Of a DNA stretch of 64,000 nucleotides, positions 10,848 through 27,752 are shown piece by piece. Each line of letters begins with the position of its first letter. Position 1 is the stretch's first letter. The notes below the pieces were generated by a model, which did no database searches, was not told the origin of the DNA, and saw nothing but the letters and a program-made list of their open reading frames with translations. The DNA is taken from sequence record PQ287644.1, one strand, 5' to 3'. The translations under genes and the position numbers were made by a program.

Positions 10848-10850
10848 ATA

Positions 10851-11851: not shown

Positions 11852-11922
11852 TTCCGAACACCCGCTCCTATTCTTTACCTCGGAATGACAACTCAATCGT
11901 TAATGATCTATAAGGAACCTGA

Positions 11923-12183
11923 ATGACTACCATCAAAGTCCAACAAAAACTGGGTCTGGCTGCTTTTGCTATCCTGTCGGACCAACTGAAAGCAGAAGGT
12001 ATTCACGTGATTAACCCGGTAGAGGGCGAGGTGATTACCGCTGACGATGTGGTTGGTAAAGTCCTGGCTGCCTTCAACCTGGGCAACAAGATTGAAGTGA
12101 ACGCGGACGTCCCCGCTAGCAATAAAGGGGTGAGTTACCGGTTCGAACGGATTGGGGGAGCGTACTACCTGGTCCGGAAGTAG
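11923..12183 (+). CDS. Hypothetical protein
   Basis: 86 aa, AAGGAA RBS, followed by terminator. Confidence 0.8.
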   Translation: MTTIKVQQKLGLAAFAILSDQLKAEGIHVINPVEGEVITADDVVGKVLAAFNLGNKIEVNADVPASNKGVSYRFERIGGAYYLVRK

Positions 12184-12193
12184 CTAACGGCCC

Positions 12194-12236
12194 GCCCTCC
12201 TGCCTTATTGGCAGGAGGGTGTATGTCCTTTATTTG
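12194..12236 (+). terminator. Intrinsic terminator
   Basis: gccctcctgcc-ttatt-ggcaggagggt then T-rich. Confidence 0.65.
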
Positions 12237-12249
12237 TTACGAGGTGGTT

Positions 12250-12936: not shown

Positions 12937-12944
12937 AAATTAAT

Positions 12945-12967
12945 AAACCTATATTACTCAGGTGTAA
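12945..12967 (+). promoter_or_regulatory. Putative phage early promoter upstream of chaperonin
   Basis: aaaccTATATTACtcaggtgtaa contains the phiKZ early consensus TATATTAC exactly. Confidence 0.75.
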
Positions 12968-13000
12968 TGCAATTAGGTATGGTTTAACAGGAGTACGAAG

Positions 13001-14677
13001 ATGTCTCAAACGCTGCTGGTACATGGTGAAGACGCCCAATGGATCATTAAACAGGTCTTGAGTGAGGTGTATGACGCCGTCACTTCGACCATGGGTCCGA
13101 ATGGTCAGTTGGTGATGATCAAGAATGGGGTCTCCACCAAGACCACCAAGGATGGGGTGACGGTAGCCCGTTCCATTCGCTTTGCAGATGAAGCCCATGA
13201 ATTGGTGAACCGGGTAATTACCGAGCCGGCTACGAAGACCGATGAGGAATGCGGGGATGGTACCACCACCACCATCATGCTGACCCACGCGCTCTATCAC
13301 CTGTTCAAGGACTTCCCAGGTTTCCAACACCACCGGAACATTGAAGACCTGGTAGAGCGGGTTATTCAACGCTTGGAATCCATGGCGATTCGGGTGGAAG
13401 TGGATGACCCTCGGTTGTATCAAGTGGCCCTGACCTCGTCTAACCAGGATGAAAAGCTCGCCCGACTGGTCAGTGAGCTCTATGCGAATAACAAAGGGAG
13501 TTATCCGGATATTGAACTCAAGGAAGGGGTCAACTTCGAAGACCAGATCGAACAAACCACAGGGCGCACCATCCGCATGTTCTACGCGAATCCCTGGTTT
13601 GCGAAAGGCCATCAAGGGGGTGTGACAGAATTGACGGGGTTTACGGCGTTCGTTATCGATCGTCGGATTGACAAGGAAGACACCCAGAAGTTGATTGATG
13701 GGGTGAATCACCTTGTAAAAACCCACGAACAACACCTGGTCCTTCCTATTCTGCTGATTGCACGAAGTTTCGAAGAAGCCGCTAACTCGGCCCTGATGCA
13801 ATTGAACGCGGCGCACCCAACCCTGGTAGAAGACGGGCGACCTTGGTTGATCCCGTTGAGTACGCCGGTGGGTGGTGCGATTGGGACCTCTGAACTGCAA
13901 GACATTGCAGTCATGCTGAACGCCCCTATGCTCAGTGACGTAGGGGACCTGACCAAGCTGGATACCCATTCGATCAATGGTCAACACGGCCAACTGGAAC
14001 TGGGGGGTAATCGGTCCATCCTGAAGAGTACCACCCCTAAGGATGAAGACCGGATCGAACAACATGCTCGGGGTATTGAGGAACTGTTGGAGGGGTTTAG
14101 CCTCAGTGATAAGTTCTCCGTACGTGCCCGGTATAACGAACGGCGTATTCGGACCCTACGGGGTAAGTTGATCACCATTTCCGTAGGTGGTGAAACCTAT
14201 TCTGAAGTCAAGGAACGGGTAGATCGGTACGAGGATGTGGTGAAAGCCATTCGTTCCGCCTTGGAGAACGGTATCCTTCCTGGCGGTGGCGTATCCCTGG
14301 TTAAGGCGGTCTTCGGTACGATCAAGGAAGGCCTCGAAGATAAAGACCAGAGCGCTGAGTTTGCTAAGCGGTATATCAACTCAGGCATCGGCAATGAGTT
14401 GATGCGACTGTCCACTATTCAGCATAAGCTGTTGTTCAAGGACACGGCGCTGTATAAGGAAAATGGGAGTTTCCATTTTAATGATGATTGGCTCAATACA
14501 CCGACCGTCATGAATCTGGCAACTGGTGAGATTGGTACCCCGGAGGGATTGGGTATTTATGACACCGCGTATGCTTCTATCACTGCGCTGAAAGGCGGAC
14601 TCCAAACCGCTAAGATATTGGCCACTACGAAGACACTGATCCTAGGGGAGAAGTTGTCAGCGGTTAAGGTGCGGTAA
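13001..14677 (+). CDS. groEL: Phage GroEL-like chaperonin (EL gp146-like)
   Basis: TMGPNGQLVMI, TKDGVTVARSI, GDGTTTT ATP motif, VGGETYSEVKERVDRYEDVVKAIRSA, GILPGGG; 558 aa. Confidence 0.95.
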   Translation: MSQTLLVHGEDAQWIIKQVLSEVYDAVTSTMGPNGQLVMIKNGVSTKTTKDGVTVARSIRFADEAHELVNRVITEPATKTDEECGDGTTTTIMLTHALYHLFKDFPGFQHHRNIEDLVERVIQRLESMAIRVEVDDPRLYQVALTSSNQDEKLARLVSELYANNKGSYPDIELKEGVNFEDQIEQTTGRTIRMFYANPWFAKGHQGGVTELTGFTAFVIDRRIDKEDTQKLIDGVNHLVKTHEQHLVLPILLIARSFEEAANSALMQLNAAHPTLVEDGRPWLIPLSTPVGGAIGTSELQDIAVMLNAPMLSDVGDLTKLDTHSINGQHGQLELGGNRSILKSTTPKDEDRIEQHARGIEELLEGFSLSDKFSVRARYNERRIRTLRGKLITISVGGETYSEVKERVDRYEDVVKAIRSALENGILPGGGVSLVKAVFGTIKEGLEDKDQSAEFAKRYINSGIGNELMRLSTIQHKLLFKDTALYKENGSFHFNDDWLNTPTVMNLATGEIGTPEGLGIYDTAYASITALKGGLQTAKILATTKTLILGEKLSAVKVR

Positions 14678-14685
14678 GGGGTTTG

Positions 14686-14730
14686 TAAAGGAGTAGTGGG
14701 GAAGACCCCTACTCCTTTATTTTTTTTTTT
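14686..14730 (+). terminator. Intrinsic terminator
   Basis: taaaggagtag...ctactccttta stem then long T run. Confidence 0.8.
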
Positions 14731-14839
14731 AGGAAATCGATGGATGACGAAGCATTTGAAGGAGGTAACATCCTATGCAGTGAGTCTTGTAACTTCTTTT
14801 GACTTACTCCCATTGGACCACCTTTAAGAGGATAAAGCA

Positions 14840-15475
14840 ATGGCTTCAAACCTTCCAATCCAAACGATCTTCCTCGACAAGTTCGTCGAGTTCAACAAAG
14901 ACCGCTACAAAGACCAGGCAGAAATGCTCGCCCTCTTTGAGGGTCTGACCCTCGCGGACATCACGATCTCCGACATCACCGCTGACGGCACCAACCCCGA
15001 GCTGCAAAGCGCCACGGTCACCTCTGTGAGCCGCAACTTCAGGGGTGTCGAACAAAAATGGCTCCCGGCGAACATCAACACTCCGTTCGCCTTCGTGGTG
15101 GTGAACAAAGGCGCTCCCCTGACCAGCGAAGCCCAACTGGCCGATCAGACCACCCCGGGCGCCTACGTTTACCTGGTCGGTGAAGGCGAAGAAGCGGTTC
15201 AACGCGTGGGCCTGGTACTGGCTTCCACCACCACCACTGAAACCCAGGCCGCCGACGCCCTGGCGCTGTTCAAGGCCAACTTCGAATACGTCCTGGACGA
15301 CGCCGATGTCGATACCGCCACCGCCAAGGTGCTCAAGGTAACCACCAACCCGTTCACCCGCGGCGAGCTCGTGTACGAAATTGGTAAGGCTCCGATCATC
15401 GAGATTCCGGAAACCGACTACGGTCGTCTGGAATTCAAAGAAATCACTCAGCCCGAACCCGAACCCCAACCGTAA
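14840..15475 (+). CDS. Putative virion protein, N-terminal paralogue of 27159..27752
   Basis: FLDKFVEFNKDRY vs FLERFIAFNKERY; strong codon bias; TATG upstream near 14774. Confidence 0.8.
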   Translation: MASNLPIQTIFLDKFVEFNKDRYKDQAEMLALFEGLTLADITISDITADGTNPELQSATVTSVSRNFRGVEQKWLPANINTPFAFVVVNKGAPLTSEAQLADQTTPGAYVYLVGEGEEAVQRVGLVLASTTTTETQAADALALFKANFEYVLDDADVDTATAKVLKVTTNPFTRGELVYEIGKAPIIEIPETDYGRLEFKEITQPEPEPQP

Positions 15476-15482
15476 GCTAGAT

Positions 15483-15515
15483 AACTACCAAGTGGGCCAG
15501 CCCACTTGGTAGTTT
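15483..15515 (+). terminator. Terminator-like hairpin
   Basis: aactaccaagtggg-ccag-cccacttggtagtt perfect stem. Confidence 0.7.
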
Positions 15516-15553
15516 ACCTCTCTTCGTACCTCATTTCAATTCCAGTGAATTTC

Positions 15554-15575
15554 AAATCTACATCATTAGGGTGAG
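15554..15575 (+). promoter_or_regulatory. Putative phage early promoter
   Basis: aaatctacatcattagggtgag, near-identical to the copy at 27859. Confidence 0.7.
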
Positions 15576-15651
15576 CCAGGGGCAATAAAAGTTCACGGAT
15601 GAATGAATTCTCTTGCAACTGGTGCTTTAAATGTCATTAGGAATATTCACC

Positions 15652-16212
15652 ATGAGTATGAGTACTGCTAAAAGGGGTAACTTTTCTACGTCCCCCGGCA
15701 AGGAAGACGACGATCTTCCTCTGCACGAGATCCGGGATGCCTTTAATCCCGCGTTTGTGAAAACGTTTGACAAACTGGGCCTCGACCCACAATTGATCAA
15801 AGAGTTTATTTACGCGCTTGATCTGCTCGACAACATCGTTAAGACCCCCAACTTCGTATCGGGCAGAATTCTGAATAACCGAGATATCGAAGCGTACGGC
15901 GAAGAAGCGGTCTTCGCGTTCAACCGGAATAACAACATCCCGTACTACTACGTACGGTTGGGTATTACCGTGTCGGAAACGGTGTACAAATTGCAGGACG
16001 AGTTTCTGGAACGTGATTATCCCAAAACGATCCTGAGTATTCTCCGTCCCATGCGTACGCCCGGTATTGACGTGACCGTAGACGGTCATCCTTACAACGT
16101 GGGGATTACCTTCAAAACGCCTCATCCTTTGTTCGGTTTGGTAAATTACCAAGATCTCCGGACTGGGATGAACACTTCAGTCCCCTTCCTACTCACTCGG
16201 GTGGGACTTTGA
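15652..16212 (+). CDS. Hypothetical protein
   Basis: ORF 15631..16212; ATG 15652 with AGGAA RBS. Confidence 0.8.
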   Translation: MSMSTAKRGNFSTSPGKEDDDLPLHEIRDAFNPAFVKTFDKLGLDPQLIKEFIYALDLLDNIVKTPNFVSGRILNNRDIEAYGEEAVFAFNRNNNIPYYYVRLGITVSETVYKLQDEFLERDYPKTILSILRPMRTPGIDVTVDGHPYNVGITFKTPHPLFGLVNYQDLRTGMNTSVPFLLTRVGL

Positions 16213-16265
16213 TCCTCTACCTGCTCCACTGGGCTTAACGCTCCGGTGGAGCGGGGTAGGGGTTA
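16213..16265 (+). terminator. Terminator-like hairpin
   Basis: cctctacctgctccac...gtggagcggggtagggg stem after stop. Confidence 0.55.
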
Positions 16266-16312
16266 TTACCGCTTTAAATTTTTCAATACACCAACCCAAA
16301 AAGGTAATAACC

Positions 16313-17197
16313 ATGCCGAAGAATGAAAACAATCCTGATAAACAAGGTCTTACGTCTATCTCTGATGAAGACTTGGATAAGGCACTCAACGAACTGGATA
16401 ACGCAGGGGAAGACGTAACTCCGGTGTCCAAAGAGACCGCTACGCAGCATCCGGGTACGCCGGATATCCTCAACCGTTATTCTCACCCCGCCCTTCAGCC
16501 GAAGAAGGGAACCCCTGAATACATCGAGTGGAAAGCCGCTCTCAAACAGGAAGAGGACCGTTTAGTGGAATCCTTGAAGACTTCGGTAACCCAGGAACAT
16601 GAAGAGAATGTCCTGAAAGGGAATACCCTGGGTACTAAACCGAAGACCAAGCAGGTAGAAGGCCTGTTGGAGATGGTGGTTCGTAAGAAGGCTGAACTCA
16701 CCCAAGAAGACACCGTAGACGCCGCAGAACGCGCATTGGCAGCGCTGAAGCGAGTACGGGAATATAACCGTAAGAAACGTATTCGACTGTGGTGTATTGT
16801 TGTCGGGCTCTTGGTGGTTGTGGGAAGTGGTCTCTATGGGGGGTGGATGTTCGTCCAGAAGCAAATGCTCACCGGTCATTACACCGTGGTCGCGGAGTGC
16901 AAAGTCCCTTACGGGGATTTTGAAATTACCGGTAAGCGGTACTACCGCTACGCGTATCAATCGATTCTGGGTTACCACCTCGTGGATGAGAGTACGGTCG
17001 AAGAAGTCACCGAAGTCAAACTCCCTGGGGATAAAATCATTATCCTGGGATTCGATGCGAGTAAAGGGAACTGGTGGCGGATGAACTATGACCGGGGAGA
17101 ATTCGGTACCGTTAAACTCAAACCTACAGATAAGTACTGGTTCGTCGGTGAGAAAGATCGTACCACCCTGGTACCTTATCACTCGTTCTGCCATTAA
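16313..17197 (+). CDS. Putative type II membrane protein
   Basis: Charged N-terminal half, RKKRIR then LWCIVVGLLVVVGSGLYGGWMFV helix, then soluble domain. Confidence 0.8.
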   Translation: MPKNENNPDKQGLTSISDEDLDKALNELDNAGEDVTPVSKETATQHPGTPDILNRYSHPALQPKKGTPEYIEWKAALKQEEDRLVESLKTSVTQEHEENVLKGNTLGTKPKTKQVEGLLEMVVRKKAELTQEDTVDAAERALAALKRVREYNRKKRIRLWCIVVGLLVVVGSGLYGGWMFVQKQMLTGHYTVVAECKVPYGDFEITGKRYYRYAYQSILGYHLVDESTVEEVTEVKLPGDKIIILGFDASKGNWWRMNYDRGEFGTVKLKPTDKYWFVGEKDRTTLVPYHSFCH

Positions 17198-17226
17198 ACG
17201 GTAACCTTACCGAGGGAATCAATCCC

Positions 17227-17805
17227 ATGCTGAATACCTCAGACCAACCTGTGGGTCTCTTGTCCAGTCGATTGTACATCGATCCCAACGATGGTTCTTT
17301 CTTTACCGGTCATTTGGAAAAGTCCCACAAGAAACGGTGCCACTTAGTACGCCACAAGCTCCAATACGCTATCCGGTATTATTCGTCCGTTAAACTGCCT
17401 GATGGGTGGTTGGTGGGGATTAGTGATCGGGAGGCGAGCCGGTATTACTTCTTCCCCACCCAGGGAAGGCGGAGGACTATTCAGGTTCCTTTACCCAGTA
17501 CCGCGTACCGGGAGATCTGGTTTAACCTGTTTAAAGGGCTCTGGATGACCGGTAGCCGGGAGGCTATCTACCTGCACAGTGTGGCGTACCCCCATCTCAT
17601 GGAGCTCTTGAACGAATCCTTAGTCCCCAGAGTGATTTCTGTTGAAGGTGAATGGAAAGGGGAAGGGTATATTGCGTCTCTGGAATGGAAGCCTGAAAAA
17701 CCCGGTCGGTTGATCGTAACAACGACCTTGGATAATGCTAAAGACCACAGTGTTCCGATCCAATGGCATCCCATCGATGCAGTGGTTCGTCTCATCCGAA
17801 AGTAA
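17227..17805 (+). CDS. Hypothetical protein
   Basis: 192-aa ORF, GAGGGA RBS. Confidence 0.75.
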   Translation: MLNTSDQPVGLLSSRLYIDPNDGSFFTGHLEKSHKKRCHLVRHKLQYAIRYYSSVKLPDGWLVGISDREASRYYFFPTQGRRRTIQVPLPSTAYREIWFNLFKGLWMTGSREAIYLHSVAYPHLMELLNESLVPRVISVEGEWKGEGYIASLEWKPEKPGRLIVTTTLDNAKDHSVPIQWHPIDAVVRLIRK

Positions 17806-17817
17806 GAGGATTACATC

Positions 17818-18681
17818 ATGAAAGAAGAAAACCAGAAGAAGACCAACAGTTTCCAAGGTGGCGATGTTCGGGTAGTGTCTTCTAAGACGCATCCCGGTAA
17901 ATCGAAATTCCTCCCGGTAAACCTCATGGGACCGGATACGATCGAGAACCCTGACCAACTGGTCCTCCACGTTCATCACCGTCTGACCGAAGGTCAGAAA
18001 GCGTTCTACCACACCCTGGAAACCTACGGGTTGTGTAAGGCCTACAGTTCGTCACCCGATCCCCGTACGTTGGTGATCAACATCGCCACCGGTCTTCCCC
18101 ACACCAAGGAAGAGAAAGACGCTCCTCGTCGCAGCATTGAGTTGGACGCCGGGATTATCCTCTACGCGGTTATCAGCGAACGGGAGGGCGGGCCCTTCAA
18201 AATCGTTATCGTAGGTACCGCTACCCATACGACCTATTTGGTGATCCGCGAGGACGTTGCCTTCTCGTTTATCATCGATAAGGTGTCGTTGTCGGTTCAG
18301 GATGCGGTAGTCGCCCTGTACGCCAGCAACCTCAGCAAAGGCCGGGGTCTCTTCGAGAACACCGCTAAACACCTTCCGGACTTCTTCTACAAGCTGTTTA
18401 AGGCTGTCTTCCCGGAAATGGTTCGTCTGGAATTCATGATCACTCACATTCATGAAGACAGTGTTCGTGTTGCACTGTACTGGGATCCTAGGGGACCTAA
18501 CAAGAATCTCATTGCCTGCAATGGGTTTGTCTTCCCGCTGGACATTTCCCAGTTCCCGGGTAAACAAATCTCCCGGGGGTATAACCTCCAGAAGAAAGAA
18601 ACCCGGCATGTCACCCACAAACAAAAGGGATCTGACCTGTCAGTCAATACCCAGCGTCTGTTGGAAAAGTTCTCGAAATAG
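17818..18681 (+). CDS. Hypothetical protein
   Basis: 287-aa ORF, GAGGA RBS. Confidence 0.8.
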   Translation: MKEENQKKTNSFQGGDVRVVSSKTHPGKSKFLPVNLMGPDTIENPDQLVLHVHHRLTEGQKAFYHTLETYGLCKAYSSSPDPRTLVINIATGLPHTKEEKDAPRRSIELDAGIILYAVISEREGGPFKIVIVGTATHTTYLVIREDVAFSFIIDKVSLSVQDAVVALYASNLSKGRGLFENTAKHLPDFFYKLFKAVFPEMVRLEFMITHIHEDSVRVALYWDPRGPNKNLIACNGFVFPLDISQFPGKQISRGYNLQKKETRHVTHKQKGSDLSVNTQRLLEKFSK

Positions 18682-18764
18682 TCTGTGAGTACGAGGTGGG
18701 GGCGTTACCCCCCACCTCTACCTATGCTGTAACGCGCTGTAATACCCTTTAAAGAGTTTTTAAC

Positions 18765-19265
18765 ATGAAAGGTACCCTACCCCATTACCAGATCAAAATT
18801 ATCGCTAGAAGTGCCTTTACAGACGATTTAAAGGAGAGACTCAAACCACTGTATGAAAACCTCTTTCACCACGAACTCCATCTCGTCATCGGTACTAAAA
18901 CAACCCGTAAGCTGTTTAAACCCTCCGCCCGTAAAAATCCCCACCCCTCCGTTATTGAGAAACGGTACGAAGACTTCTTCAAAGTAACCGACAAGATAGT
19001 ACTCGTTACTCACTTGGGAGAAGCCGTGGGATATCTGGCGGTGGTTAAGAACAAGATCACCTCACTCTTTGTTGAAGAAGACTTCCGGAAGCTAGGCTTA
19101 GGGCGGATCATGGTGTCCAAGTTACAACGGGGTGGGCATCCTGTGAACCGGTTCCTCTACGTTCAATGCTTTACCCAGAATACAGCTGGTATCAACTTCT
19201 ACCGGAAAGTTGGGTTTAAGGAAATTGACAGAGGAGAGATCTACACGGTTTTGTTAATGGAATAA
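18765..19265 (+). CDS. GNAT-family acetyltransferase
   Basis: ITSLFVEEDFRKLGLGRIMV and QNTAGINFYRKVGF. Confidence 0.85.
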   Translation: MKGTLPHYQIKIIARSAFTDDLKERLKPLYENLFHHELHLVIGTKTTRKLFKPSARKNPHPSVIEKRYEDFFKVTDKIVLVTHLGEAVGYLAVVKNKITSLFVEEDFRKLGLGRIMVSKLQRGGHPVNRFLYVQCFTQNTAGINFYRKVGFKEIDRGEIYTVLLME

Positions 19266-19323
19266 ACACCGCACTAGGAGTAGCCCATAAGGGCTACTCC
19301 TAGGGGTGTATTTTATTTTTGTT
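19266..19323. terminator. Bidirectional terminator between convergent genes
   Basis: ctaggagtagccc-ataa-gggctactcctag with A/T-rich flanks. Confidence 0.75.
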
Positions 19324-20250
19324 TCAAAAGAAGCGGTAGATATCTCGGTAGCGTCCTGCTTGGTAGTAATCCCCTGATCCAATGGTGGAAGAGTTAACTC
19401 CCCCTACCAGGTAAATCCCACTGTCGTCCGTGAGCATTTCAAAGGCATACCGTTTAGTTACCGTGGTCATTTGCTTGTACCAACGGTCTTTCAGTATGTC
19501 GTAAATATGGAACACGATGTAACCGTTTTCAACACCACAGAGAATCAGGAACTGTTTCCACGAAGTCCCCCCAGTCCAACTGCTGGCAATAGGTGCTTCT
19601 GTTACCGTTCTCCAGGTGTTGGTAACGGGATCGTATTCCCTGACCAATCTTGACGTACCCGCGGGGTCGTTCCATCCCCCGAATACATAGATCTTTCCAT
19701 TGAACTGTCCGATGTAATGCCCATTGAGCGCCATCGGCATATCCGCTTTACGGGTCCAGACGTTGGTGGTGGTGTCATACTGGTGGTTGAGGGCTGTGGG
19801 TTTATTGGTACTCCCCATGTAACCCCCCATGCAGAAGATCGTCTTATCATCCAGAGTAATACACCGACCTTGTCCCCGGGCTCCATCCGGGAGATTATTC
19901 AAGTTCGTTGAAGACCCTGTTGAAGGATTCAATTTCCACACGTGACTCACGTAGTTCCCATTATTACCGGTAATACCCCAGAAGGAACTGTTGCAGTAAC
20001 ACCCGCCACTCCAGGCCCATACGGAGATATTCCCGCTAGTGGCCCACGTACGGGTGGTAAAGTCATAACGGGCATACGTCTGTTGTTGACCCCCACCGGC
20101 AAACTGACCCCCGAAGATGTGAATCTTCCCTCCACCGATTCCCGCACTGAAGTTAGCAATACCGTTGAAAGGAACTTGAGTCACCCATTCCATTCGTCCC
20201 AGAATGTAGGGGTTATCATCAGAAAGGGTAAATAGTTGACTCTCTAACAT
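19324..20250 (-). CDS. Kelch-repeat beta-propeller protein
   Basis: Repeated GG...YD..T..W units (KIHIFGG, IFCMGGY, KIYVFGGW, IYLVGG; YDTTTNVWTRKADMP). Confidence 0.85.
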   Translation of the reverse strand: MLESQLFTLSDDNPYILGRMEWVTQVPFNGIANFSAGIGGGKIHIFGGQFAGGGQQQTYARYDFTTRTWATSGNISVWAWSGGCYCNSSFWGITGNNGNYVSHVWKLNPSTGSSTNLNNLPDGARGQGRCITLDDKTIFCMGGYMGSTNKPTALNHQYDTTTNVWTRKADMPMALNGHYIGQFNGKIYVFGGWNDPAGTSRLVREYDPVTNTWRTVTEAPIASSWTGGTSWKQFLILCGVENGYIVFHIYDILKDRWYKQMTTVTKRYAFEMLTDDSGIYLVGGVNSSTIGSGDYYQAGRYRDIYRFF

Positions 20251-20295
20251 GAAGCCGCTCCTAAAGAGAGGGAGTTAATCCCTCTCTTACTGATT

Positions 20296-20979
20296 TCAGT
20301 TCAACACAAACAAAGGACCCGGAACGGAAGGCAGTTCCTCTGCGACGGTGGCTGCTTCAGCCCTATCCATAAGGGACCATATCGTTTCCAGTCCTTCCTG
20401 GATACGAGAAGTCACTTCATTGGACAAGTCAATGGTTTCTTGAGCGGTCAGGGAAAGTGTTACACCTTCCTTGGTGCGAATAGAAGCGGAGAAGGGTTTC
20501 TCCTCACGCAATGCTTCTTTCGCCTGGATACTCAAGGCCGTCAAATGGATTCGGTGGGTGGATTCGATCAAGAGGGTGTGGACCGTCTCCCCGAATCGCA
20601 CTTCCATACCTGTGTAGAAAGCCGCCGCAATCACATTCTGGATTTCATTCTTACGAATGTCCTTAGCGGATCGGAGGCGTTCTGCGACTTCCTCAGGGGT
20701 AAAGTCCCGAGTGGTCCACTGCTGGGTCCAATACCCATCAATCTGTTTAGGGGGGAGTTCAACCGGTACATCCCCGGCGGGTGGTTGGGTCAATTGAACG
20801 ACAGCCATCAGGAAGGGTTCTCCTTCCAAGGCACTGGCTTGTAGCTTACTGGGAATGGGCCAGTCAGGGAACTTCTTCCGAACATCCTCAATGTAAAGAG
20901 GATATTCCCCCGTGCGCGTATCAATCAAGGCGGTGCTTTCATATACCACAGTTACCCTATCCATACTCATTCTCCTCAT
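20296..20979 (-). CDS. Tail-fibre assembly chaperone-like protein
   Basis: GEYPLY...ELPPKQIDGYWTQQWTTRDFTPEE pattern typical of fibre assembly proteins; sits in the fibre operon. Confidence 0.65.
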   Translation of the reverse strand: MRRMSMDRVTVVYESTALIDTRTGEYPLYIEDVRKKFPDWPIPSKLQASALEGEPFLMAVVQLTQPPAGDVPVELPPKQIDGYWTQQWTTRDFTPEEVAERLRSAKDIRKNEIQNVIAAAFYTGMEVRFGETVHTLLIESTHRIHLTALSIQAKEALREEKPFSASIRTKEGVTLSLTAQETIDLSNEVTSRIQEGLETIWSLMDRAEAATVAEELPSVPGPLFVLN

Positions 20980-22481
20980 TACGTGATTTTAATTCGATAC
21001 CCTTGGGAACCGCCAAAGAGGTAGAGGGCTTGGTTGTAGTTCACCCCCCACGCACTCGTAGCAACACCCGAGCCCAAACTTCCCAATAGCACCCACTTGT
21101 TTAACCGAGGCTCAAAATACCGAATCGGTTGATCGTTAACACTCCCCGCAATCGCGTAGAGTTCCCCATTATTCCCCAGCACAAAGGCTGCACCAACTGG
21201 GATGCCGGGAAGAGTCACCGTTGTCCAGGTGTTCGTAGCCGGGTTATACTGGTACATCCCAGGGTTGTTCGCCCCCGCCACTACCCCACCGATAACACTC
21301 ACCTTCCCTTGATAAACCATTACCGTAAAGTCAGAACAATCCCCAGTCTCAGCGAAGGCCTTAAGGACAGTGTGGGTATTGGCAACAGGATCGTACGCAA
21401 TCAAGAAGCCTTTATTCGTGGTGGGGGTTCCTGACTGTACCCCGCAGATGTACACCTTCCCATTGAGATAAACCGCTCCACCTGTCAGCGGAGTCAGGGG
21501 CATATTGGGTAAACGGGTGACGATGTTCGTAGTGGGATTATACCCGTACGCATCATTCGCAGCGCCTCCTAGGAAGTAAAGAACATCCTTACCATCAGAA
21601 ACCAGGATGGAGTTCTTCCGGGGGGGATTGGTAGGCCCTGTTGGACTCAGGGTTTCAAGTACCCGGGTTTCAAAGTTAACCCGACGGAACTCTTTGGTAG
21701 CGGTCTCTACCCCACCGTAGTAGTAAATATGGTTTCCATGGACACATCCCCGTCCGGTATTGAATAACAATGAACCCGGCCAGTTATCCATCGCCTCACT
21801 CTGACCTTTAATAAACGGGTACGTTCCCTTGGCATACAGAATAGGGCGCCATCCCTGGGTAGGGACTTCAGAATCACTGGCGGAGTATGTGACATTCCTA
21901 ATGGTGTACCACCCCCGATACGCTTGAGTGGTACCGGGTTCATTACCCGTAATGTCTTTACCCCAGTTGGTATTCCCGTCAGTATTCCCACCACTGGCTG
22001 CTTGATTCATCCCCAGTTCCGCATCCGTGAACCGAGTGGGCCAGTTGAATCCATTGGGATCCGATACATGGACGTTATACAACAACCGGTCCCATTCAGA
22101 CGTTGCTGTATTGCCATCACTCCCCATGGTCAAGAGACCCACGGTGTAAATAACCCCTCGGTACCGGAGCTCATAGTTCCCTGTCCGTAGACCGGCTTGG
22201 GTCAACAGAATACGCCGAACATTATTCCGGATCGGCATTTGAGGAATGTAACAGGTTTCATTGTGGTTCGAAAACTTCAACCACGGTTTGCCTTCATTGA
22301 TCACTTTACCAAAGGCAATCCCAGTGAGTTTCGCTAAATCCTCGTAACCAAACAATTCCGTTGCAGGAGTGATCCCGTACCATCCTTGGGCAAGACTACC
22401 CGCTTTCAGTTTAGAAGGCCCCGGATAAGGATCGTCCGGAAAGGCATTCGCGGTCGATGTAAAGAGTAACGCTTCTATCAT
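20979..22481 (-). CDS. Virion-type N-terminal domain fused to C-terminal Kelch propeller
   Basis: GWYGI...WLKF...YIPQMPIRNN...EWDRLLY domain resembling phiKZ-like tail proteins; about six Kelch repeats in the C-terminal half. Confidence 0.8.
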   Translation of the reverse strand: MIEALLFTSTANAFPDDPYPGPSKLKAGSLAQGWYGITPATELFGYEDLAKLTGIAFGKVINEGKPWLKFSNHNETCYIPQMPIRNNVRRILLTQAGLRTGNYELRYRGVIYTVGLLTMGSDGNTATSEWDRLLYNVHVSDPNGFNWPTRFTDAELGMNQAASGGNTDGNTNWGKDITGNEPGTTQAYRGWYTIRNVTYSASDSEVPTQGWRPILYAKGTYPFIKGQSEAMDNWPGSLLFNTGRGCVHGNHIYYYGGVETATKEFRRVNFETRVLETLSPTGPTNPPRKNSILVSDGKDVLYFLGGAANDAYGYNPTTNIVTRLPNMPLTPLTGGAVYLNGKVYICGVQSGTPTTNKGFLIAYDPVANTHTVLKAFAETGDCSDFTVMVYQGKVSVIGGVVAGANNPGMYQYNPATNTWTTVTLPGIPVGAAFVLGNNGELYAIAGSVNDQPIRYFEPRLNKWVLLGSLGSGVATSAWGVNYNQALYLFGGSQGYRIKIT

Positions 22482-22542
22482 GATGACTTATACCCCAAAA
22501 GAATACCAGGAGACCCCGTAGAGCCCCCTGGTAGTCATACTG

Positions 22543-25500
22543 TTAAGGAACAACAGCCCCCAACGCACCAATCCATTTGGTTCCATTCCAAGTAAAGACG
22601 TAGACCAGTTCAGATCCACTGACGGATGGGGGAGTTCCGTTATGCCACACCAAGGGTGTTGCATCCTTACCGGAGAAGGTCACAACACCCGCTCCGCCGG
22701 TGACATTAACCGTCAGGACCATCCCCCGTACCGGGGCTTTAGGTCCATCAGCAATCACCATTTGCTTACCCCCCGCCGCGGTGTTATTGATCTGGATGTA
22801 CTGATCCACCAACGGATTGATTTCCCCACTGGTCGTAAAGACCTTAATCGGCAAATCATAGCGGTCAAAGGTGAGATCCAGTTCCTTCCATTCAGGAATA
22901 TCCGTACCAGCACGGAAGACCCGAACGTACTGTTTACCATCCTTGGCTTGGAGGTCTTCAATACCCTTCGGAAACTCAATGGCTTTCCATTCGGTACCGT
23001 CACCTTCTGCATTGACAGCCTGGGCGTAATACGTCCCCGCAACCGCATTCGGCACGGGACCAATAGGGAGGGGTACCCAACGGTTACCCAACCGAACAAC
23101 CCGGCCTTCAGACTCCATGGGGGAATTGACATCACCCGCCACCAAACGCCCCCACAGGACCCAACCCCGATCAACGGTCTTGTAGAACACGTTGAAGGTC
23201 TCAGAGACCGCCCAGTCACCGACTCGGCCACTGAAGGCATCCGAAGGTGCGTCTACACCCGGCGGCAACGTAAGCCACCGACTGCCTTGCTCACCCTGAA
23301 TACCGGGTTTCCCTTGAGGTCCGGGAGGACCGTCACCCCCGGTCTTACCGGTTTGACCGCGCCATTCACCGGTTTCACGCCAGGCGTTAGTCGACGTACT
23401 CCAGATGGCTAGAGTGTTGGACTCCGCCAGGTAATACGCATCCCCCGCAACTCCCGCAGGAATAGCCGCTTGTAGAGCTGCCAGGTTCGCATAATCACCT
23501 TTAATGGGTACCGCAGGGCCTTCAGGGCCTTGTTCACCCCGTTCCCCGTTCTTACCCGGTTCACCCCGGAAATCAAACCCAGGACTCCACTCGCGCTCAT
23601 CATTCACGAAATACGTTAAATGATTCTCCAGAACGAGGATAGCGTCACCTTGCTTATAACCACCTGGCGCAGGCAGTTCTGCCAAGGTGGGTACTACATC
23701 CACCATGTTCAACCCAGCACCGGGAGCGCCATCACTTCCTGGCATGGAGACCGGACCCACGTTATCCCAACGAGTTCCAGTATTCACCCAGAGGTCTTTA
23801 TTCAGGTCAACGTAGGCTTTACCTTGAGTTTCCTCGTTAATCGGAGGAGGATCGGCATCCGCAGGTGTCAGGACTTTAATGATGTCCAAGGACTTACCAT
23901 TCAGGCCATCCTTACCGTTCTCACCATCCTTCCCTTTAAAGACACCCAGATTCGCCCACGCATTCGAAATGAATCCATAGATCGCGTTTTCATCACGAAC
24001 CGCATAGACCCATTGATCTTCAGGATTCGCAGGAAGATCCGCTACTGTGTCAACCACACCCCGAAGAACAATGTTGGTGCCGTTACGTCCATGGAGGCTG
24101 GCTAGGAACTCCTCTTCACTGCCGGTGTTCCCTTTGGAAATCCAGAGTTCGTACGTGGACTGACCGTTGATACCGTCTTCCCCTTTAAAGGGGCCCAGGT
24201 CCAACCAGGTCGAACTCGCCGCACTCCATACGTACAACCGAAGGGTGTCTCGTGTCACATACCCATCTTGGTTAGCCGGAGGGTTGGGTAAGTTGTCCAG
24301 ATCAGCACGGGTCCCTACAGTCCCCAAGACATTCAGGTTCTCACCGGGTTCGCCTTTCATGGCCGCCCAGTAATCATCTTCCGTCTTACCTTGGTTCTCG
24401 GGTTTATTCAACCAGACCTGAACACTGTTCAGGCCACCCGGTCCTACATCACCCTTATCCCCTTTAAACCCCCCCAGCTTCCGCCATGCGCTGTTCAGGT
24501 AGATGTACAGGGTATTCTCATCCTGAACCGAATAAACATCCTGTTCTACACCGGGGTTGGGGAGGTCATCTATGGTCGCTACGGTGTCTTTAACGATCAA
24601 GTTACGACCGTCAACACCGTTCTTACCATCCTCTCCTTTGAATTGACCCAGAATTACCCAGTTATTCTCAATCCACATACGGACCGTGTTGTCCGCGCGA
24701 ACCGACCAGACATCCTGTTCGACCGCGTTACTCGGGAGTTCACTGGCCAGGTCTACCGCCCCTTTCACCACGATACTCTTACCGTCAGTACCGTCCTTGC
24801 CGTCTTTACCCTTATACTGACCGACATCAACCCAATCTGTACGGTCTGCAATGTAGATCCACAGGTGGCCCGTATCCAACGTCACCCAACCATGTTGATC
24901 AACCGGGTCTTTAGCATTCAGCGCATTACGGTCAGCCACAGTTCCCTGTACCTGAAGGTTAGCCCCGCGTTCACCCCGAATGGCTTCCTGCCACTGTGTA
25001 ATGGTTTTGTTCTCGTTACCGGGAATCTTCTTCCAGGTTTCGAACGCATCATCTCCCTGAGGGCCTTTATCGCCCCGTTGGGAATCCAGGAACTCCTGAA
25101 GAGTCTTTTCTTCATTCCCAGGAATCTCTTTCCACAGCTCGAAGGTACTCTTGCCGTCAGGACCTCGAATATTCAAACTTTCCCAGACAAACTCACCCGC
25201 TGTTTTACCCGGAACCAGAACATGGATATCATTCCGCCACAGGTAGGCATCCCCGGGTTTATTTCCTTCAGGCAGAGGGAGATCGAGGTTGTCGGGCCAA
25301 ACACCCAACAGGTTAATCCCCCGTTCCCCTTGCAAGGAACCCGAAGACGCCCATTCGGTGCCGTTCCATACCCGTAGGGCAAAGTTAACGAAGTAGGCCG
25401 TACCGATCGGAAGCCCTTGGGTATCAATAGCCTCCAGTTCAGCTTCCGAATTGAGTTTGCCTTTAAGAACAACCCCTTGAGTTGAGAGGGATTCTAGATT

Positions 25501-25683
25501 CTCCTTCAGCCAGCGAGTCCGCGCATCCAGCACACGCGCTTGGAAGTTAGCCGCTCCCTCGCCATTGTCTCCCCCGCGAACCCGTACATCAGTCACCATA
25601 GCCGGGAGGTGTTCTTCCCATCGAGACTCCTCGACAATTGCCGGTAGTTCACCCGGCGTTACTGTTTCATCACCAATAGCCAT
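22543..25683 (-). CDS. Long tail fibre with collagen-like (GXY) linkers and tandem repeat modules
   Basis: 1046 aa; N-terminal NFQARVLDARTRWL anchor; many GxxGxxG runs; repeated W..LG.FKG.DG modules. Confidence 0.85.
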   Translation of the reverse strand: MAIGDETVTPGELPAIVEESRWEEHLPAMVTDVRVRGGDNGEGAANFQARVLDARTRWLKENLESLSTQGVVLKGKLNSEAELEAIDTQGLPIGTAYFVNFALRVWNGTEWASSGSLQGERGINLLGVWPDNLDLPLPEGNKPGDAYLWRNDIHVLVPGKTAGEFVWESLNIRGPDGKSTFELWKEIPGNEEKTLQEFLDSQRGDKGPQGDDAFETWKKIPGNENKTITQWQEAIRGERGANLQVQGTVADRNALNAKDPVDQHGWVTLDTGHLWIYIADRTDWVDVGQYKGKDGKDGTDGKSIVVKGAVDLASELPSNAVEQDVWSVRADNTVRMWIENNWVILGQFKGEDGKNGVDGRNLIVKDTVATIDDLPNPGVEQDVYSVQDENTLYIYLNSAWRKLGGFKGDKGDVGPGGLNSVQVWLNKPENQGKTEDDYWAAMKGEPGENLNVLGTVGTRADLDNLPNPPANQDGYVTRDTLRLYVWSAASSTWLDLGPFKGEDGINGQSTYELWISKGNTGSEEEFLASLHGRNGTNIVLRGVVDTVADLPANPEDQWVYAVRDENAIYGFISNAWANLGVFKGKDGENGKDGLNGKSLDIIKVLTPADADPPPINEETQGKAYVDLNKDLWVNTGTRWDNVGPVSMPGSDGAPGAGLNMVDVVPTLAELPAPGGYKQGDAILVLENHLTYFVNDEREWSPGFDFRGEPGKNGERGEQGPEGPAVPIKGDYANLAALQAAIPAGVAGDAYYLAESNTLAIWSTSTNAWRETGEWRGQTGKTGGDGPPGPQGKPGIQGEQGSRWLTLPPGVDAPSDAFSGRVGDWAVSETFNVFYKTVDRGWVLWGRLVAGDVNSPMESEGRVVRLGNRWVPLPIGPVPNAVAGTYYAQAVNAEGDGTEWKAIEFPKGIEDLQAKDGKQYVRVFRAGTDIPEWKELDLTFDRYDLPIKVFTTSGEINPLVDQYIQINNTAAGGKQMVIADGPKAPVRGMVLTVNVTGGAGVVTFSGKDATPLVWHNGTPPSVSGSELVYVFTWNGTKWIGALGAVVP

Positions 25684-25700
25684 TTAAGAAATTCCTCTGA

Positions 25701-27143
25701 TTAAGGGGTAAAGACAAGATGGGTGTTCAATTGACCCACCCGCACGGTGGTCGTTTGAGCGACCCCTTTCTTCAACACAATCATGACCCGGAGTTTCAAG
25801 GCCTTAGGGGCTCTGGCCAATTCAAGGATTTGGGTATCGAAGATCCCCGAGAGATCCCCTTGACGCAGGGGGTAATTCAGTTCAACGTTCTGACCCGAGC
25901 GTACAGTTTGGACTTGATCGTCCTGGTAGGTTACTTCCAGTTCCAGTCCTACTTGCAAGACCGCTTCCGCATCGGTTTGAATCGCCCAACGACCCTGAGC
26001 TACCAATTTCATCCCTACGGTCAGGTTTGTAATAGGGAGATCCTGTTCCATTCCCAAGGTCGGTTGATTACCGGTAGGCGTGCCCGTAAAGGACATCACC
26101 TGGTATTCGCCCCCTGAAGGGTTGGCTTCCTTGGTAATAGCGACGGTCAAACCGGTCAGTTGATTACCTCCAATACCGGTATTTGAGGCGATCTCTACTG
26201 TGGTAATGGTAGCGCCTCCCGAATTTCCAGCACTACCATCATTACCAGTCAGCAAAGGGTTAGGGTTAATGCTCCCGAAGAAGTGAGCGGTCTCCGGAGG
26301 TGTCGTGCTGAACGGAATGTAACTGGTCGGTAAGGTAATGGTATTCTTGAACAGCTTGCTCACCACAGCGGCAACATGGTTACCGATGATCTCGGCTCCT
26401 TTGGGACTTGGGTGTACACCGTCCCCCAACATGCCTGCCAGCGGCTTATTGACATTACCCGGCTCTACCATGTCATCCCAGGGGTTAACCACGATAACAC
26501 CCCGTTTAGGCAGCTCAGAGAGCATCCACTGGTGCACTTGGTAATGAATAGCCAATTGTTCATCACTGATCCCAATAGCGGCTTGTTCTACCGGGGTTTC
26601 AGCGATCGCAATGACGGTCTTACCATTGGCCAGCAATGTGGTGTAAATCTCGGAGAGGTTATTGATCGTTTCATTGAACGTCTGGTTACGCAGACGGTCA
26701 TTCCCCGAACCTAAATGGATAATCACGTCGAACTTATCCAGGGAAGCCAGGAGTTGAGGAAGGCGTTGGGCCTGCTGGGAAGTAGTATTTCCGTCGACAC
26801 CGGCGTTCATGGCATCCGGGAAGGCTACGACTCCCTCGGTCTTCGCGCTGGTCCAGAAGGCCAGACCAACGTTACCTTTCACACACTGGTAAGCACGACT
26901 GTCACCGTACACCACGATATTGCGGTTAAACGGCAGTCGGTCATTACTTACCGCATTGACTTTGGTGGTCAGGGTATTCACTTCTCCTAACAAATAACGG
27001 GTGCGGGCATCCAGCACGCGCGCTTGCTTGTTCGCGTTGCCGGTGCCTTCTTCGGTGGCTTCAACCTTGTCATCCGGCATCAGAGCCAGTAAAGGTTCAA
27101 CCCATTCCGGTTGTTCATTAATCACTACGGGATTGTCAGCCAT
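25701..27143 (-). CDS. Tail spike/fibre with SGNH (GDSL) esterase domain
   Basis: VYGDS, NAGVDG, GSGND, DGVHP catalytic blocks; N-terminal NKQARVLDARTRYL anchor shared with the fibre. Confidence 0.85.
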   Translation of the reverse strand: MADNPVVINEQPEWVEPLLALMPDDKVEATEEGTGNANKQARVLDARTRYLLGEVNTLTTKVNAVSNDRLPFNRNIVVYGDSRAYQCVKGNVGLAFWTSAKTEGVVAFPDAMNAGVDGNTTSQQAQRLPQLLASLDKFDVIIHLGSGNDRLRNQTFNETINNLSEIYTTLLANGKTVIAIAETPVEQAAIGISDEQLAIHYQVHQWMLSELPKRGVIVVNPWDDMVEPGNVNKPLAGMLGDGVHPSPKGAEIIGNHVAAVVSKLFKNTITLPTSYIPFSTTPPETAHFFGSINPNPLLTGNDGSAGNSGGATITTVEIASNTGIGGNQLTGLTVAITKEANPSGGEYQVMSFTGTPTGNQPTLGMEQDLPITNLTVGMKLVAQGRWAIQTDAEAVLQVGLELEVTYQDDQVQTVRSGQNVELNYPLRQGDLSGIFDTQILELARAPKALKLRVMIVLKKGVAQTTTVRVGQLNTHLVFTP

Positions 27144-27158
27144 GAGAATAGGCCCTGT

Positions 27159-27752
27159 TTAATACGTGAGGGTGCCGTCGTAACGGAATTGTCCGTTAAA
27201 ACGAGGAATGGCGTCGTATTGGCTTTCTACGACAGCCAGGGTACCAGTAACGGTGTTGGAATCAATGGTGGCTTGAGTGAACTCCCCGTCGAGGGTAATT
27301 TCATCATCCGTCAAGTCGTAGTAGCATTTGGCTTTGATCAGCGCTTTAATGTGTTCAGGGTTACGACTCCCTTTGAACACCAATACCGCACCTTCAATGA
27401 TATCTTCGTCTCGTTTGACTTGGTAAATACCTTCCACCCCCTGGGTTTGTAAAGTGTCCCAATCAACCGGATCGGGAGTTTCCAGCATGGAGACCTTATT
27501 CTTCACATAATCCGCTGGGAGGTACCGTTGGTTCTTACCGGTCAGTTTACCTTCGGAATCGATATTGACCACCCGAGCAAATTCACCGCCTTCTACCTCA
27601 ACTTTCCTGAGGTCAGAGAGGGTAGTGTTGTCCAGGGTGAGTTGCTCTAATACGCTAACAATGTTCGGTTCATCGGAATAACGTTCTTTATTAAAAGCGA
27701 TGAACCGTTCCAGAAACAGTAGATCGTTTGGAAAGGCCATGGGCGTGTCCAC
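27159..27752 (-). CDS. Putative virion/tail protein
   Basis: First gene of minus-strand fibre operon; C-terminal FNGQFRYDGTLTY; TATG motif upstream at 27786-27783; real start may be ATG 27740. Confidence 0.75.
   Translation of the reverse strand: MDTPMAFPNDLLFLERFIAFNKERYSDEPNIVSVLEQLTLDNTTLSDLRKVEVEGGEFARVVNIDSEGKLTGKNQRYLPADYVKNKVSMLETPDPVDWDTLQTQGVEGIYQVKRDEDIIEGAVLVFKGSRNPEHIKALIKAKCYYDLTDDEITLDGEFTQATIDSNTVTGTLAVVESQYDAIPRFNGQFRYDGTLTY

Follow-up and report, generated by a model that had tools for sequence, protein, structure and literature searches.

We found that the gene cluster at positions 27752-19324 (minus strand) of the window, that is, of the whole stretch of 64,000 nucleotides analyzed here, probably encodes a host-interaction module on the virion surface of a nucleus-forming jumbo phage of the EL type, in which heads carrying a short N-terminal tag plug into a common virion socket; we would put the probability of this reading at roughly 60%. 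The source was Pseudomonas phage HHBS8_1, an Elvirus of the EL jumbo type that is ~97% identical to phage EL. Gene content, domain identities, conservation and modular distribution of the tag peptide, and conserved gene order were observed directly. The cluster consisted of six intact genes (g158-g153), all located on the minus strand and matching EL ORF158 to ORF153. Their content was as the initial annotation had described. The term operon, also used there, was only partly appropriate: the six minus-strand genes were present, but a terminator-like hairpin on the same strand (22504..22533; 13 pairs, then a T-run; dG -24.8 kcal/mol, z -4.2) split the unit in the gap between the fiber gene and g155. 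A small hairpin (20264..20288, minus strand; dG -18.3 kcal/mol, z -2.95) was found in the g154/g153 gap, immediately before the ribosome-binding site of g153. The bidirectional intrinsic terminator proposed for the end of the cluster was present at 19274-19303, between the convergent g153 and GNAT acetyltransferase genes, and was strong on both strands (dG -34 kcal/mol, z -7.7). A TATG motif had been suggested as the other boundary; this was uninformative, since TATG is rarer in the window (256 occurrences) than in shuffles (372) and marks nothing by itself.

The core of the cluster would be a unit common to many myoviruses, namely, a long fiber (g156) and a DUF4376-type chaperone (g154) that folds or caps the conserved C-terminal domain of the fiber. 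The fiber (EL ORF156; 22543..25683, minus strand; 1046 aa) is a homolog of phiKZ gp146 and begins with an N-terminal anchor, continues with repeated knob modules between which six short G-X-Y runs are interspersed, and ends in a conserved C-terminal domain. Its previous description as a collagen fiber agreed with the G-X-Y runs, but not with the Pfam Collagen score of 16.9 bits, which was under the 27.2 cut-off. The small C-terminal domain reported earlier was present (~115 aa; aa 931-1046, 22546..22893, minus strand) and recurred at the very C-terminal end of Psa21 gp201, phiKZ gp146, phiTE_215, CB7_10, PVP-SE1 69, RSL2 158 and RAY gp216. The chaperone role proposed for g154 (EL ORF154; 20296..20979, minus strand; 227 aa, annotated start 20970), a DUF4376-type tail-fiber chaperone or cap, was supported by Pfam DUF4376 matches in 4 of 7 members of its family (best E 5.9e-14; g154 itself scored 14.2 bits, under the Pfam cut-off) and by gene order, as a fiber gene is followed by a g154-like gene in six other phages (phiTE, CB7, RAY, Psa21, PVP-SE1 and RSL2). 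Also, the CB7 homolog of g154 was confirmed in virions by MS/MS. The DUF4376 proteins V22 gp27 and A5 gp9, whose genes are located downstream of the fiber gene, have been characterized experimentally as fiber chaperones or caps (PMC7289586, PMC10579305).

Additions of the EL lineage to this core would be an SGNH esterase (g157), a module-only protein (g158) and two accessory Kelch proteins (g155 and g153). The first of these (EL ORF157; 25701..27143, minus strand; 480 aa) starts with a fiber-type anchor (aa 1-75), which is followed by an SGNH esterase domain (aa ~74-262) and then by an uncharacterized C-terminal domain. With 53.3 bits against Pfam Lipase_GDSL_2 (cut-off 32.9) and all SGNH blocks (GDS, G, GxND and DxxH) in place, the designation SGNH spike was correct at the domain level, and by its sequence g157 is apparently an active SGNH esterase. 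Its N-terminal anchor (26919..27143, minus strand) is shared with g156 (BLASTP 46% identity over 54 aa, E 5e-9), and an anchor HMM searched against the whole phage genome matched these two proteins only. Because the anchors are of identical type, g157 should occupy the same attachment site as the fiber or an equivalent one.

The two Kelch propellers that had been predicted were found in g153 and in the C-terminal half of g155. The latter (EL ORF155; 20979..22481, minus strand; 500 aa) is a full-length homolog of phiKZ gp83 (43.5% identity overall and ~55% in the N-domain); its N-terminal peptide and linker lead into a ~190-aa WLKF...GWRP head domain (aa 27-225), and a six-bladed Kelch propeller (aa ~240-500) follows. 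In g153 (EL ORF153; 19324..20250, minus strand; 308 aa), the N-terminal peptide is directly joined to the propeller. Both peptides, aa 1-11 of g155 (22449..22481, minus strand; a predicted short helix) and aa 1-15 of g153 (20206..20250, minus strand; missing from its closest non-EL homolog, PA5oct gp176), are of the type M-[I/L/F]-E-x-x-L-L. When the whole phage genome was scanned in all six frames, a loose form of the motif turned up four times in total, and two of these were the true starts of the Kelch genes. A large family of ~200-aa head proteins also begins with this peptide, so the sharing noted in the initial annotation was above chance. The strict motif opened 18 of 43 short members of this family, and conserved columns were E at position 3 (47%) and L at positions 5 and 6 (51%).

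The peptide is conserved between g155 and phiKZ gp83, and the first 7 residues of phiKZ gp83 and gp298 are identical. Besides, it was present on all 4 PhiPA3 paralogs (080 to 083), on two unrelated heads in metagenome contig L009 (one of them a 243-aa head), and on both a WLKF/GWRP-domain protein and a stand-alone Kelch protein in contig L021. Thus, different heads within one phage carry it, in agreement with the proposal that the heads are interchangeable. Within one genome, the peptides were marginally more alike than between genomes (similarity 0.57 vs 0.41; 980 of 20000 permutations reached the observed value). AF2 predicted a helix at aa 2-11 (moderate confidence, ~65), then a linker, which is variable and proline-rich, and then a confident domain. 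In relatives, the same head domain is found with other N-terminal modules, either Mtd_N-like (25.9 bits, cut-off 26.3) or g158-like. In the preferred reading, the peptide is thus a portable tag used throughout the family, and several N-terminal attachment modules, this one included, can take the place in front of a putative receptor-binding head. Docking is its most likely role, in that the tag would plug each head into a common virion socket.

What the heads might do is suggested by phiKZ gp298, which is reported to occur in virions at low abundance and to be required for adsorption to some wild strains only (preprint 10.1101/2025.11.23.690004). In record notes, phiKZ gp83 and gp298 are both virion structural proteins (gp298 is listed as 'structural protein'). 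By analogy with gp298, the Kelch proteins of EL probably assist adsorption as accessory factors, with an effect on a subset of hosts; for g153, the functional transfer is by analogy because the two proteins are barely similar beyond the peptide (BLASTP E 0.04). The gp298 report, together with a portable peptide found on different heads, supports the idea of interchangeable accessory heads with a docking tag. Kelch domains also showed weak resemblance to NanM-type mutarotases and could, for this reason, be enzymes rather than binders.

Two candidates for the socket were considered. The first is the module represented by g158 (EL ORF158; 27159..27752, minus strand; 197 aa from GTG, although its start may be the ATG at 27740, giving 193 aa, rather than the GTG at 27752), which consists of the N-terminal module only and belongs to the g158/g147 family (phrog_18233). 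Its paralog outside the cluster, g147 (EL ORF147; 14840..15475, plus strand; 211 aa), is a second possible socket protein. In Erwinia phage RisingSun, a g158-type domain forms the N-terminus of gp197, gp201 and gp205-207, and in gp197 and gp201 this domain (aa 1-190) is fused directly to the same WLKF/GWRP head domain as in g155, at precisely the place that the peptide and linker occupy there. Because it is fused in place of the peptide, the g158-like module is another possible partner: heads would plug into these small virion-attached proteins, as a split form of the relatives' single chains. This idea is also favored by the presence in EL of two module-only proteins and two peptide-bearing heads, by the position of g158 as the first gene in the cluster, and by a combination of faint similarity between g158 and phiKZ gp143 (E 4e-4 over 62 aa) with the behavior of the chimallivirus module family DUF7941, which oligomerizes by binding the disordered segment of the next protomer, as described in a Goslar study (PMC13742148). 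However, profile comparison of g158 with DUF7941 members gave no significant match (hhalign probability 2.8%), its AF2 model was unusable (pLDDT 36.8), and no g158-like gene was found in those loci of phiKZ, PhiPA3 and the metagenome contigs that encode peptide-bearing heads, which represent parts of genomes. Moreover, a fusion elsewhere suggests an interaction without proving one. We view this socket as possible but doubtful.

The second candidate, put forward in the initial annotation, is the C-terminal tip domain of g156, on which the peptide would dock both Kelch heads to give a branched fiber. In EL, the Kelch genes flank the fiber-chaperone pair, and phages of different hosts have kept the tip domain, as would be expected of a platform. 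Also, phiKZ has both a fiber with the tip domain (gp146) and peptide-bearing Kelch proteins; gp83 and gp146 bear the same note, 'structural head protein', and may for this reason fractionate together. On the other hand, only the EL lineage shows this linkage: in phiKZ, the genes for gp83 and gp298 lie far from that for gp146, and the peptide gene of contig L023 had no fiber gene within 10 kb. Conversely, the Certrevirus phages phiTE and CB7, as well as PVP-SE1, have the tip and the chaperone gene, but no peptide-bearing head in the examined loci. Besides, the DUF4376 chaperone or cap would be expected to bind at the tip, and the hairpin described above lies between the fiber gene and g155. Docking on the fiber tip is therefore unlikely.

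A different question is where on the virion a common socket would be located. The phiKZ homologs of the fiber and g155 are noted as 'structural head protein', which clashes with a baseplate location. The fiber and Kelch proteins could be collar or capsid fibers on the head or neck, used for first contact or sensing, rather than baseplate receptor-binding proteins. Consistent with this, the RefSeq notes on phiKZ gp83, gp145 and gp146 (second-hand, which weakens them) all refer to the head; the phiKZ atlas, with 40 modeled proteins, contains none of the three and has gp131 and gp133-135 as baseplate fibers (PMC13250141); the fiber and g154-like genes of Certrevirus and PVP-SE1 are located between the major head gene and neck genes; and a separate EL paralog family adjoins a baseplate gene. 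In contrast, a phiKZ TnSeq preprint considered gp145 and gp146 putative tail fibers and gp298 tail-associated (10.1101/2025.11.23.690004), and much of the peripheral baseplate is unmodeled in both phiKZ and Goslar. A head or neck location is thus improbable on present evidence. Finally, the peptide might be part of its own fold, an oligomerization element or a sorting signal, as the moderate helix confidence and the limited spread of the strict motif would allow, but this is quite unlikely given that it is found in front of unrelated folds (Kelch, the WLKF/GWRP domain and the 243-aa head), is set apart from them by the variable linker, and is replaced in relatives by recognized or likely attachment domains.

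The preferred reading, tagged heads on a common socket, can be compared with several known systems. Like g153, phiKZ gp298 has the same type of N-terminal peptide followed by a Kelch/NanM-like propeller (~300-335 aa); unlike g153, it has a published adsorption phenotype, its similarity beyond the peptide is marginal, and its gene is found among non-essential genes and tRNAs rather than beside a fiber gene. The order of peptide, linker, head domain and Kelch propeller in g155 is the same in phiKZ gp83, but the genes for gp83 and PhiPA3 gp080-083 are located between DNA polymerase and head genes, unlike the EL fiber cluster, and some of the PhiPA3 paralogs have no Kelch part. The phiKZ baseplate fibers gp131, gp133, gp134 and gp135 also combine a common N-terminal attachment segment with differing C-terminal heads, and gp131 has a beta-propeller at the distal fiber end, although it is seven-bladed and non-Kelch; their common element is a whole N-terminal domain in a six-helix bundle, in contrast to the 7-10-residue tag found here (PMC13250141). 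A candidate counterpart family of these fibers is encoded elsewhere in the EL genome. In organization, g154 resembles the chaperone or 'cap' members of the Alteromonas phage fiber-chaperone pairs V22 gp26/gp27 and A5 gp8/gp9 (195-240 aa, C-terminal DUF4376, gene downstream of the fiber gene). The differences are that g154 falls under the Pfam cut-off, that a Kelch gene separates the fiber and chaperone genes in EL, and that the CB7 homolog of g154 is present in virions. Kelch propellers of other jumbo phages, CBB_552 and PA5oct gp176, were detected in virions by mass spectrometry (ESI-MS/MS for the latter). PA5oct gp176 is 38% identical to g153, and its gene adjoins a 'putative adhesin' gene, but its N-terminus differs and lacks the peptide. 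Pfam and PHROGs searches of g156 and g157 revealed no T4 gp10-like branching domain. In the anchor-branch arrangement of Klebsiella phage KP32 type, a short conserved N-terminal peptide of the second receptor-binding protein docks on the first one. The principle is alike, as short conserved N-terminal peptides let several heads use one attachment site, but the KP32-type heads are depolymerase spikes and those of EL are Kelch propellers. In other phages, the tag found in EL is carried by many different putative host-binding heads, including the adsorption-linked phiKZ Kelch protein gp298.

The 8.4 kb of the minus-strand cluster at 19324-27752 showed 100% identity to Pseudomonas phage HHBS8_1 (PQ287644) and 96.6-96.9% identity to phage EL and six further EL-like phages. 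HHBS8_1 encodes a nuclear-shell protein and PhuZ and is therefore a nucleus-forming jumbo phage. The six genes recognized in the initial annotation matched EL ORF158 to ORF153 (here g158 to g153) and none was disrupted in EL or HHBS8_1; protein identities between the two phages were 95.6-99.6%, with the lowest conservation in g157. The bidirectional terminator placed at the 3' end was also found: a 13-pair hairpin at 19274-19303 has A- and T-run flanks and the same stability on either strand (dG -34 kcal/mol, z about -7.7), and separates the convergent g153 and GNAT acetyltransferase genes. The acetyltransferase gene (18765-19265, plus strand) converges on the cluster and the terminator is common to both; its location near a surface protein with an esterase may be meaningful or incidental. 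The 5' limit of the cluster is a divergent intergenic region of 120 bp with two minus-strand copies of TATG. The idea that this motif marks the boundary was not borne out, because TATG is present in 256 copies in the window and is rarer than in dinucleotide-preserving shuffles (372 ± 17 expected), which makes it uninformative by itself. As a transcription unit, the cluster had the genes and the terminator described, but it was not continuous. At 22504-22533, in the 61-nt gap 3' of the fibre gene, a hairpin of 13 pairs precedes a T-run (dG -24.8, z -4.2), and a second, smaller hairpin precedes g153. These hairpins lie 5' of g155 and of g153, and therefore a stem-loop stands ahead of each Kelch gene.

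Both g153 and g155 contained repeated Kelch motifs above Pfam thresholds, in agreement with the two propellers expected. g153 matched Kelch_1 (77.7 bits, cut-off 20.1), and g155 matched Kelch_6 (47 bits, cut-off 25.3) and PF24681 (51.8 bits, cut-off 50); E values against PDB Kelch chains ranged from 1e-13 to 1e-30. The AF2 model of g155 (pLDDT 80.2, pTM 0.80) opens with a helix of about 65 pLDDT (aa 2-11) and an extended linker, followed by a domain of ~190 aa at aa 27-225 (pLDDT above 90). Residues 240-500 superposed on the Kelch domains of KLHL proteins and KEAP1 (target TM 0.65-0.72), and the Kelch part is thus predicted by the model to be a six-bladed propeller. The ~190-aa domain, which we designate WLKF/GWRP, is not covered by a Pfam model, and a PDB search with a clean domain profile retrieved no relative of solved structure. 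In two Foldseek runs with the full g155 model, the Kelch part dominated the matches. Over its full length, g155 was homologous to phiKZ gp83 (43.5% identity) and PhiPA3 gp083. In g153, an N-terminal peptide is joined straight to the propeller. Its closest non-EL relative was PA5oct gp176 (38% identity), which differs at the N-terminus, adjoins a "putative adhesin" gene and is flagged as detected in virions by ESI-MS/MS. Kelch proteins are also contained in CBB virions (PMC5259590).

The N-terminal peptide (M-[I/L/F]-E-x-x-L-L) that the two Kelch proteins had been noted to share proved to be beyond chance, as it was rare in the genome and recurred across a family of head proteins. All six frames of the complete HHBS8_1 genome, with loci kept apart, were scanned for a loose form of the motif (M-[ILFMV]-E-x-x-[LM]-[LFICSMVT], with an ATG start and 60 or more codons following); it occurred four times, and two of these occurrences were the true starts of g153 and g155. 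A third, at about 9042-9599 (plus strand), began a 186-aa ORF with neither a linker motif nor head-like features; it was rejected as a tagged head and is probably a chance match. Word-indexed protein searches returned almost only close relatives, and the wider family was reached with an exhaustive HMMER search using aa 1-240 of g155, which detected 651 representative proteins. In these proteins, the WLKF/GWRP domain was mostly C-terminal or stand-alone. Among its members of at most 245 aa, 18 of 43 started with the peptide; the column shares were 47% for E at position 3 and 51% for L at positions 5 and 6. Other N-terminal modules found ahead of the domain included a ~50-aa Mtd_N-like module (sub-threshold) and a module that looked FN3-like by eye and had no Pfam match; in gp197 and gp201 of Erwinia phage RisingSun, the domain was preceded by a g158-like domain. 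About 15 paralogous genes for putative receptor-binding proteins, RisingSun gp193-gp207, are arrayed over 17 kb (517-18127 of the locus). In this array, a fibre anchor, g158-like modules and FN3-like modules (by eye) are combined with the WLKF/GWRP domain, and it is a richer version of the EL cluster.

The peptide was also found on differing heads within single phages. For example, phiKZ gp83 and gp298 had the same first seven residues, all of PhiPA3 080-083 carried the peptide, and one metagenome contig (L009) had it on two unrelated heads. In another contig (L021), a protein with the peptide and the domain preceded a stand-alone Kelch protein of 302 aa, which had the peptide at its start as well. 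The peptide directly preceded the propeller in g153, phiKZ gp298 and the L021 Kelch protein. Because of these occurrences on differing heads elsewhere, the EL cluster is one instance of a recurring pattern of tagged heads. The annotated start of PhiPA3 gp082 (3935-4618 of the locus, plus strand) apparently lies 3' of the real one; translation from an ATG 5' of it yields a protein of 223 aa that starts with the peptide type of its three neighbours. When 8-residue peptides were compared, likeness was 0.57 within genomes and 0.41 between genomes, and the observed value was reached in 980 of 20000 permutations; thus, peptides were only marginally more alike within one genome than between genomes.

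A functional link for these heads comes from a phiKZ TnSeq preprint, in which gp298, a low-abundance Kelch virion protein, was dispensable on PAO1 and required for adsorption to two wild isolates, and the putative tail fibres gp145 and gp146 tolerated no insertions (10.1101/2025.11.23.690004). Based on the common tag and the gp298 data, the best reading of g153, and by extension of g155, is that of an accessory adsorption factor.

The second shared element in the cluster, absent from the initial annotation, was an N-terminal anchor of fibre g156 and esterase g157. The SGNH assignment of g157 held well: Lipase_GDSL_2 was matched with 53.3 bits (cut-off 32.9), and translation and alignment to 7c2a showed that the GDS, NAGVDG, GSGND and DGVHP blocks, with the conserved Ser, Gly, Asn and Asp-x-x-His, were all present. 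The first ~60 residues of g157 and g156 were 46% identical (E 5e-9), and this anchor lies at 25429-25683 in g156 and 26919-27143 in g157 (both minus strand). Over the whole phage genome the anchor HMM matched these two proteins only, and elsewhere it matched the "carbohydrate binding" proteins gp193 and gp195 of RisingSun. Judged by sequence, this anchor is the clearest example in the cluster of two heads with one attachment element. g156 itself matched PHROG tail-fibre families. Its label as a collagen fibre was too strong, although one may speak of collagen-like segments: six G-X-Y runs of 4-9 triplets are set between repeated knob-like modules, but long uninterrupted G-X-Y repeats were absent and the Pfam Collagen score was sub-threshold (16.9 bits, cut-off 27.2). 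Homologues of g156 were phiKZ gp146, Psa21 gp201, RAY gp216, RSL2 ORF158, phiTE_215, CB7_10 and PVP-SE1 gene 69. The last ~115 residues of g156 were kept at the extreme C-terminus of all seven, with hosts ranging from Pseudomonas to Salmonella. In a separate region of the HHBS8_1 record (105956-116821; 8957-19822 of the locus), four consecutive proteins of 247, 1184, 1193 and 956 aa have a common N-terminal domain (phrog_2163) and adjoin a baseplate assembly gene. They likely correspond to the baseplate fibre paralogs gp131-135 of phiKZ and would thus be a second fibre system of HHBS8_1.

The reading of g154 as a chaperone was supported by DUF4376 in its homologues and by gene order. g154 had no Pfam match of its own above threshold (DUF4376, 14.2 bits, cut-off 25), and DUF4376 was matched by four of the seven aligned homologues (best E 5.9e-14). 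In six other phages a g154-like gene was directly 3' of the fibre gene; in EL it is one position further downstream because g155 intervenes. The CB7 homologue was confirmed in virions by MS/MS, and g154, as a putative tail-fibre chaperone of the DUF4376 type, may stay on the particle. Similar systems are V22 gp27 and A5 gp9, which have a C-terminal DUF4376 and are encoded 3' of their own fibre genes. Strict co-occurrence of the g154-like chaperone with the fibre C-terminal domain was rejected, since phiKZ gp146 has the domain and no g154 homologue was detected in that phage. A PDB search with a clean family profile found no solved relative of the g154 family.

The first gene of the cluster, g158 (197 aa), had a paralog, g147 (211 aa; 14840-15475, plus strand), with 28% identity (E 5.5e-9). 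g147 is encoded some 12 kb away from the cluster, right behind the GroEL gene of the phage. Both proteins consist of one module, which also forms the N-terminus of five RisingSun proteins. g158 had no Pfam match, and its predicted structure was too low in confidence for use (pLDDT 36.8). BLASTP detected phiKZ gp143, a DUF7941 member, with E 4e-4 over 62 aa only, and hhalign of the g158 family with a profile of gp143 and RAY gp215 gave a probability of 2.8% (E 0.016). These values did not establish a relation of g158 to the DUF7941 filament module, which is present in Goslar gp22 and in phiKZ gp126, gp127 and gp143 (PMC13742148). In Psa21, PVP-SE1 and phiTE, the fibre gene is preceded by a gene whose product had no homology to g158 or phiKZ gp143. 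In Psa21 this is gp200 (838-1320 of the locus), whose N-terminus resembles the Mtd_N-like module by eye; g158 and gp143 occupy its position in their own genomes and neither is homologous to it. ORF158 is only 330 nt in the EL record (13839-14168 of the locus), yet the 197-codon frame (27159-27752, minus strand) is open and 98% conserved in EL, and in OP599913, an EL-like record, the g158 homologue is labelled "terminase large subunit". Both the short call and this label look like annotation errors.

With regard to the function of the tag, we give odds of about one in three that its helix is a widespread plug, which joins exchangeable accessory receptor-binding heads to one conserved virion socket in jumbo and other phages, so that tagged genes, wherever encoded, define accessory host range. 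Kelch propellers and the WLKF/GWRP domain would be among such heads. One candidate for the socket is g158/g147, which is indirectly suggested by the fusions of a g158-like domain to the head domain in RisingSun gp197 and gp201; in the metagenome contigs, which were short, no partner genes were found beside the peptide-bearing genes. The fibre and Kelch proteins may be located on the baseplate or on the head. Notes in the phiKZ record call gp83, gp145 and gp146 "structural head protein". The phiKZ atlas contains models of 40 proteins; these three are not among them, and its baseplate fibres are gp131 and gp133-135 (PMC13250141). Besides, a distinct family of EL paralogs, which have a common N-terminal domain, is encoded next to a baseplate gene. 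Docking of the Kelch heads on the C-terminal tip of g156, as initially proposed, could not be supported: Kelch and fibre genes were linked in the EL lineage only, no tagged heads were present in the loci examined from phages that have this tip and chaperone, and the DUF4376 protein would be expected to sit at the tip.

If the plug reading is true, EL g153/g155 and phiKZ gp83/gp298 would be the first recognized pairs of plug-bearing heads. A tag marking accessory heads would let sequence alone reveal scattered host-range genes; for example, the phiKZ gp298 gene sits among tRNA genes, far from tail genes, yet it is tagged. The tag would also narrow the search for the attachment site of the heads in existing cryo-EM maps. 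Even the phiKZ and Goslar atlases leave large parts of the peripheral baseplate without a model. Pseudomonas aeruginosa jumbo phages serve as models and therapeutic candidates, and their host-recognition parts are largely unassigned. The EL record has listed the genes of the cluster, labelled as Kelch, GDSL and fibre, since 2005. The presence of Kelch proteins in the virions of jumbo phages is already published, as is, since late 2025, a Kelch adsorption factor. The analysis provides a first link at the sequence level between an experimentally supported adsorption factor and the Kelch proteins of EL, which have carried annotations without function since 2005. In the papers examined, we found no description of the ~190-aa WLKF/GWRP head domain or of the particular short N-terminal tag that phiKZ gp83/gp298, EL g153/g155 and hundreds of head proteins have in common.

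Paralogous fibres with common N-terminal elements are known already from phiKZ gp131-135. A T4 gp10-like branching domain was not found in g156 or g157 by Pfam and PHROGs scans. Conserved docking peptides occur in Klebsiella phages, and what the EL cluster has in common with the anchor-branch receptor-binding protein system of Klebsiella phages is the principle alone.
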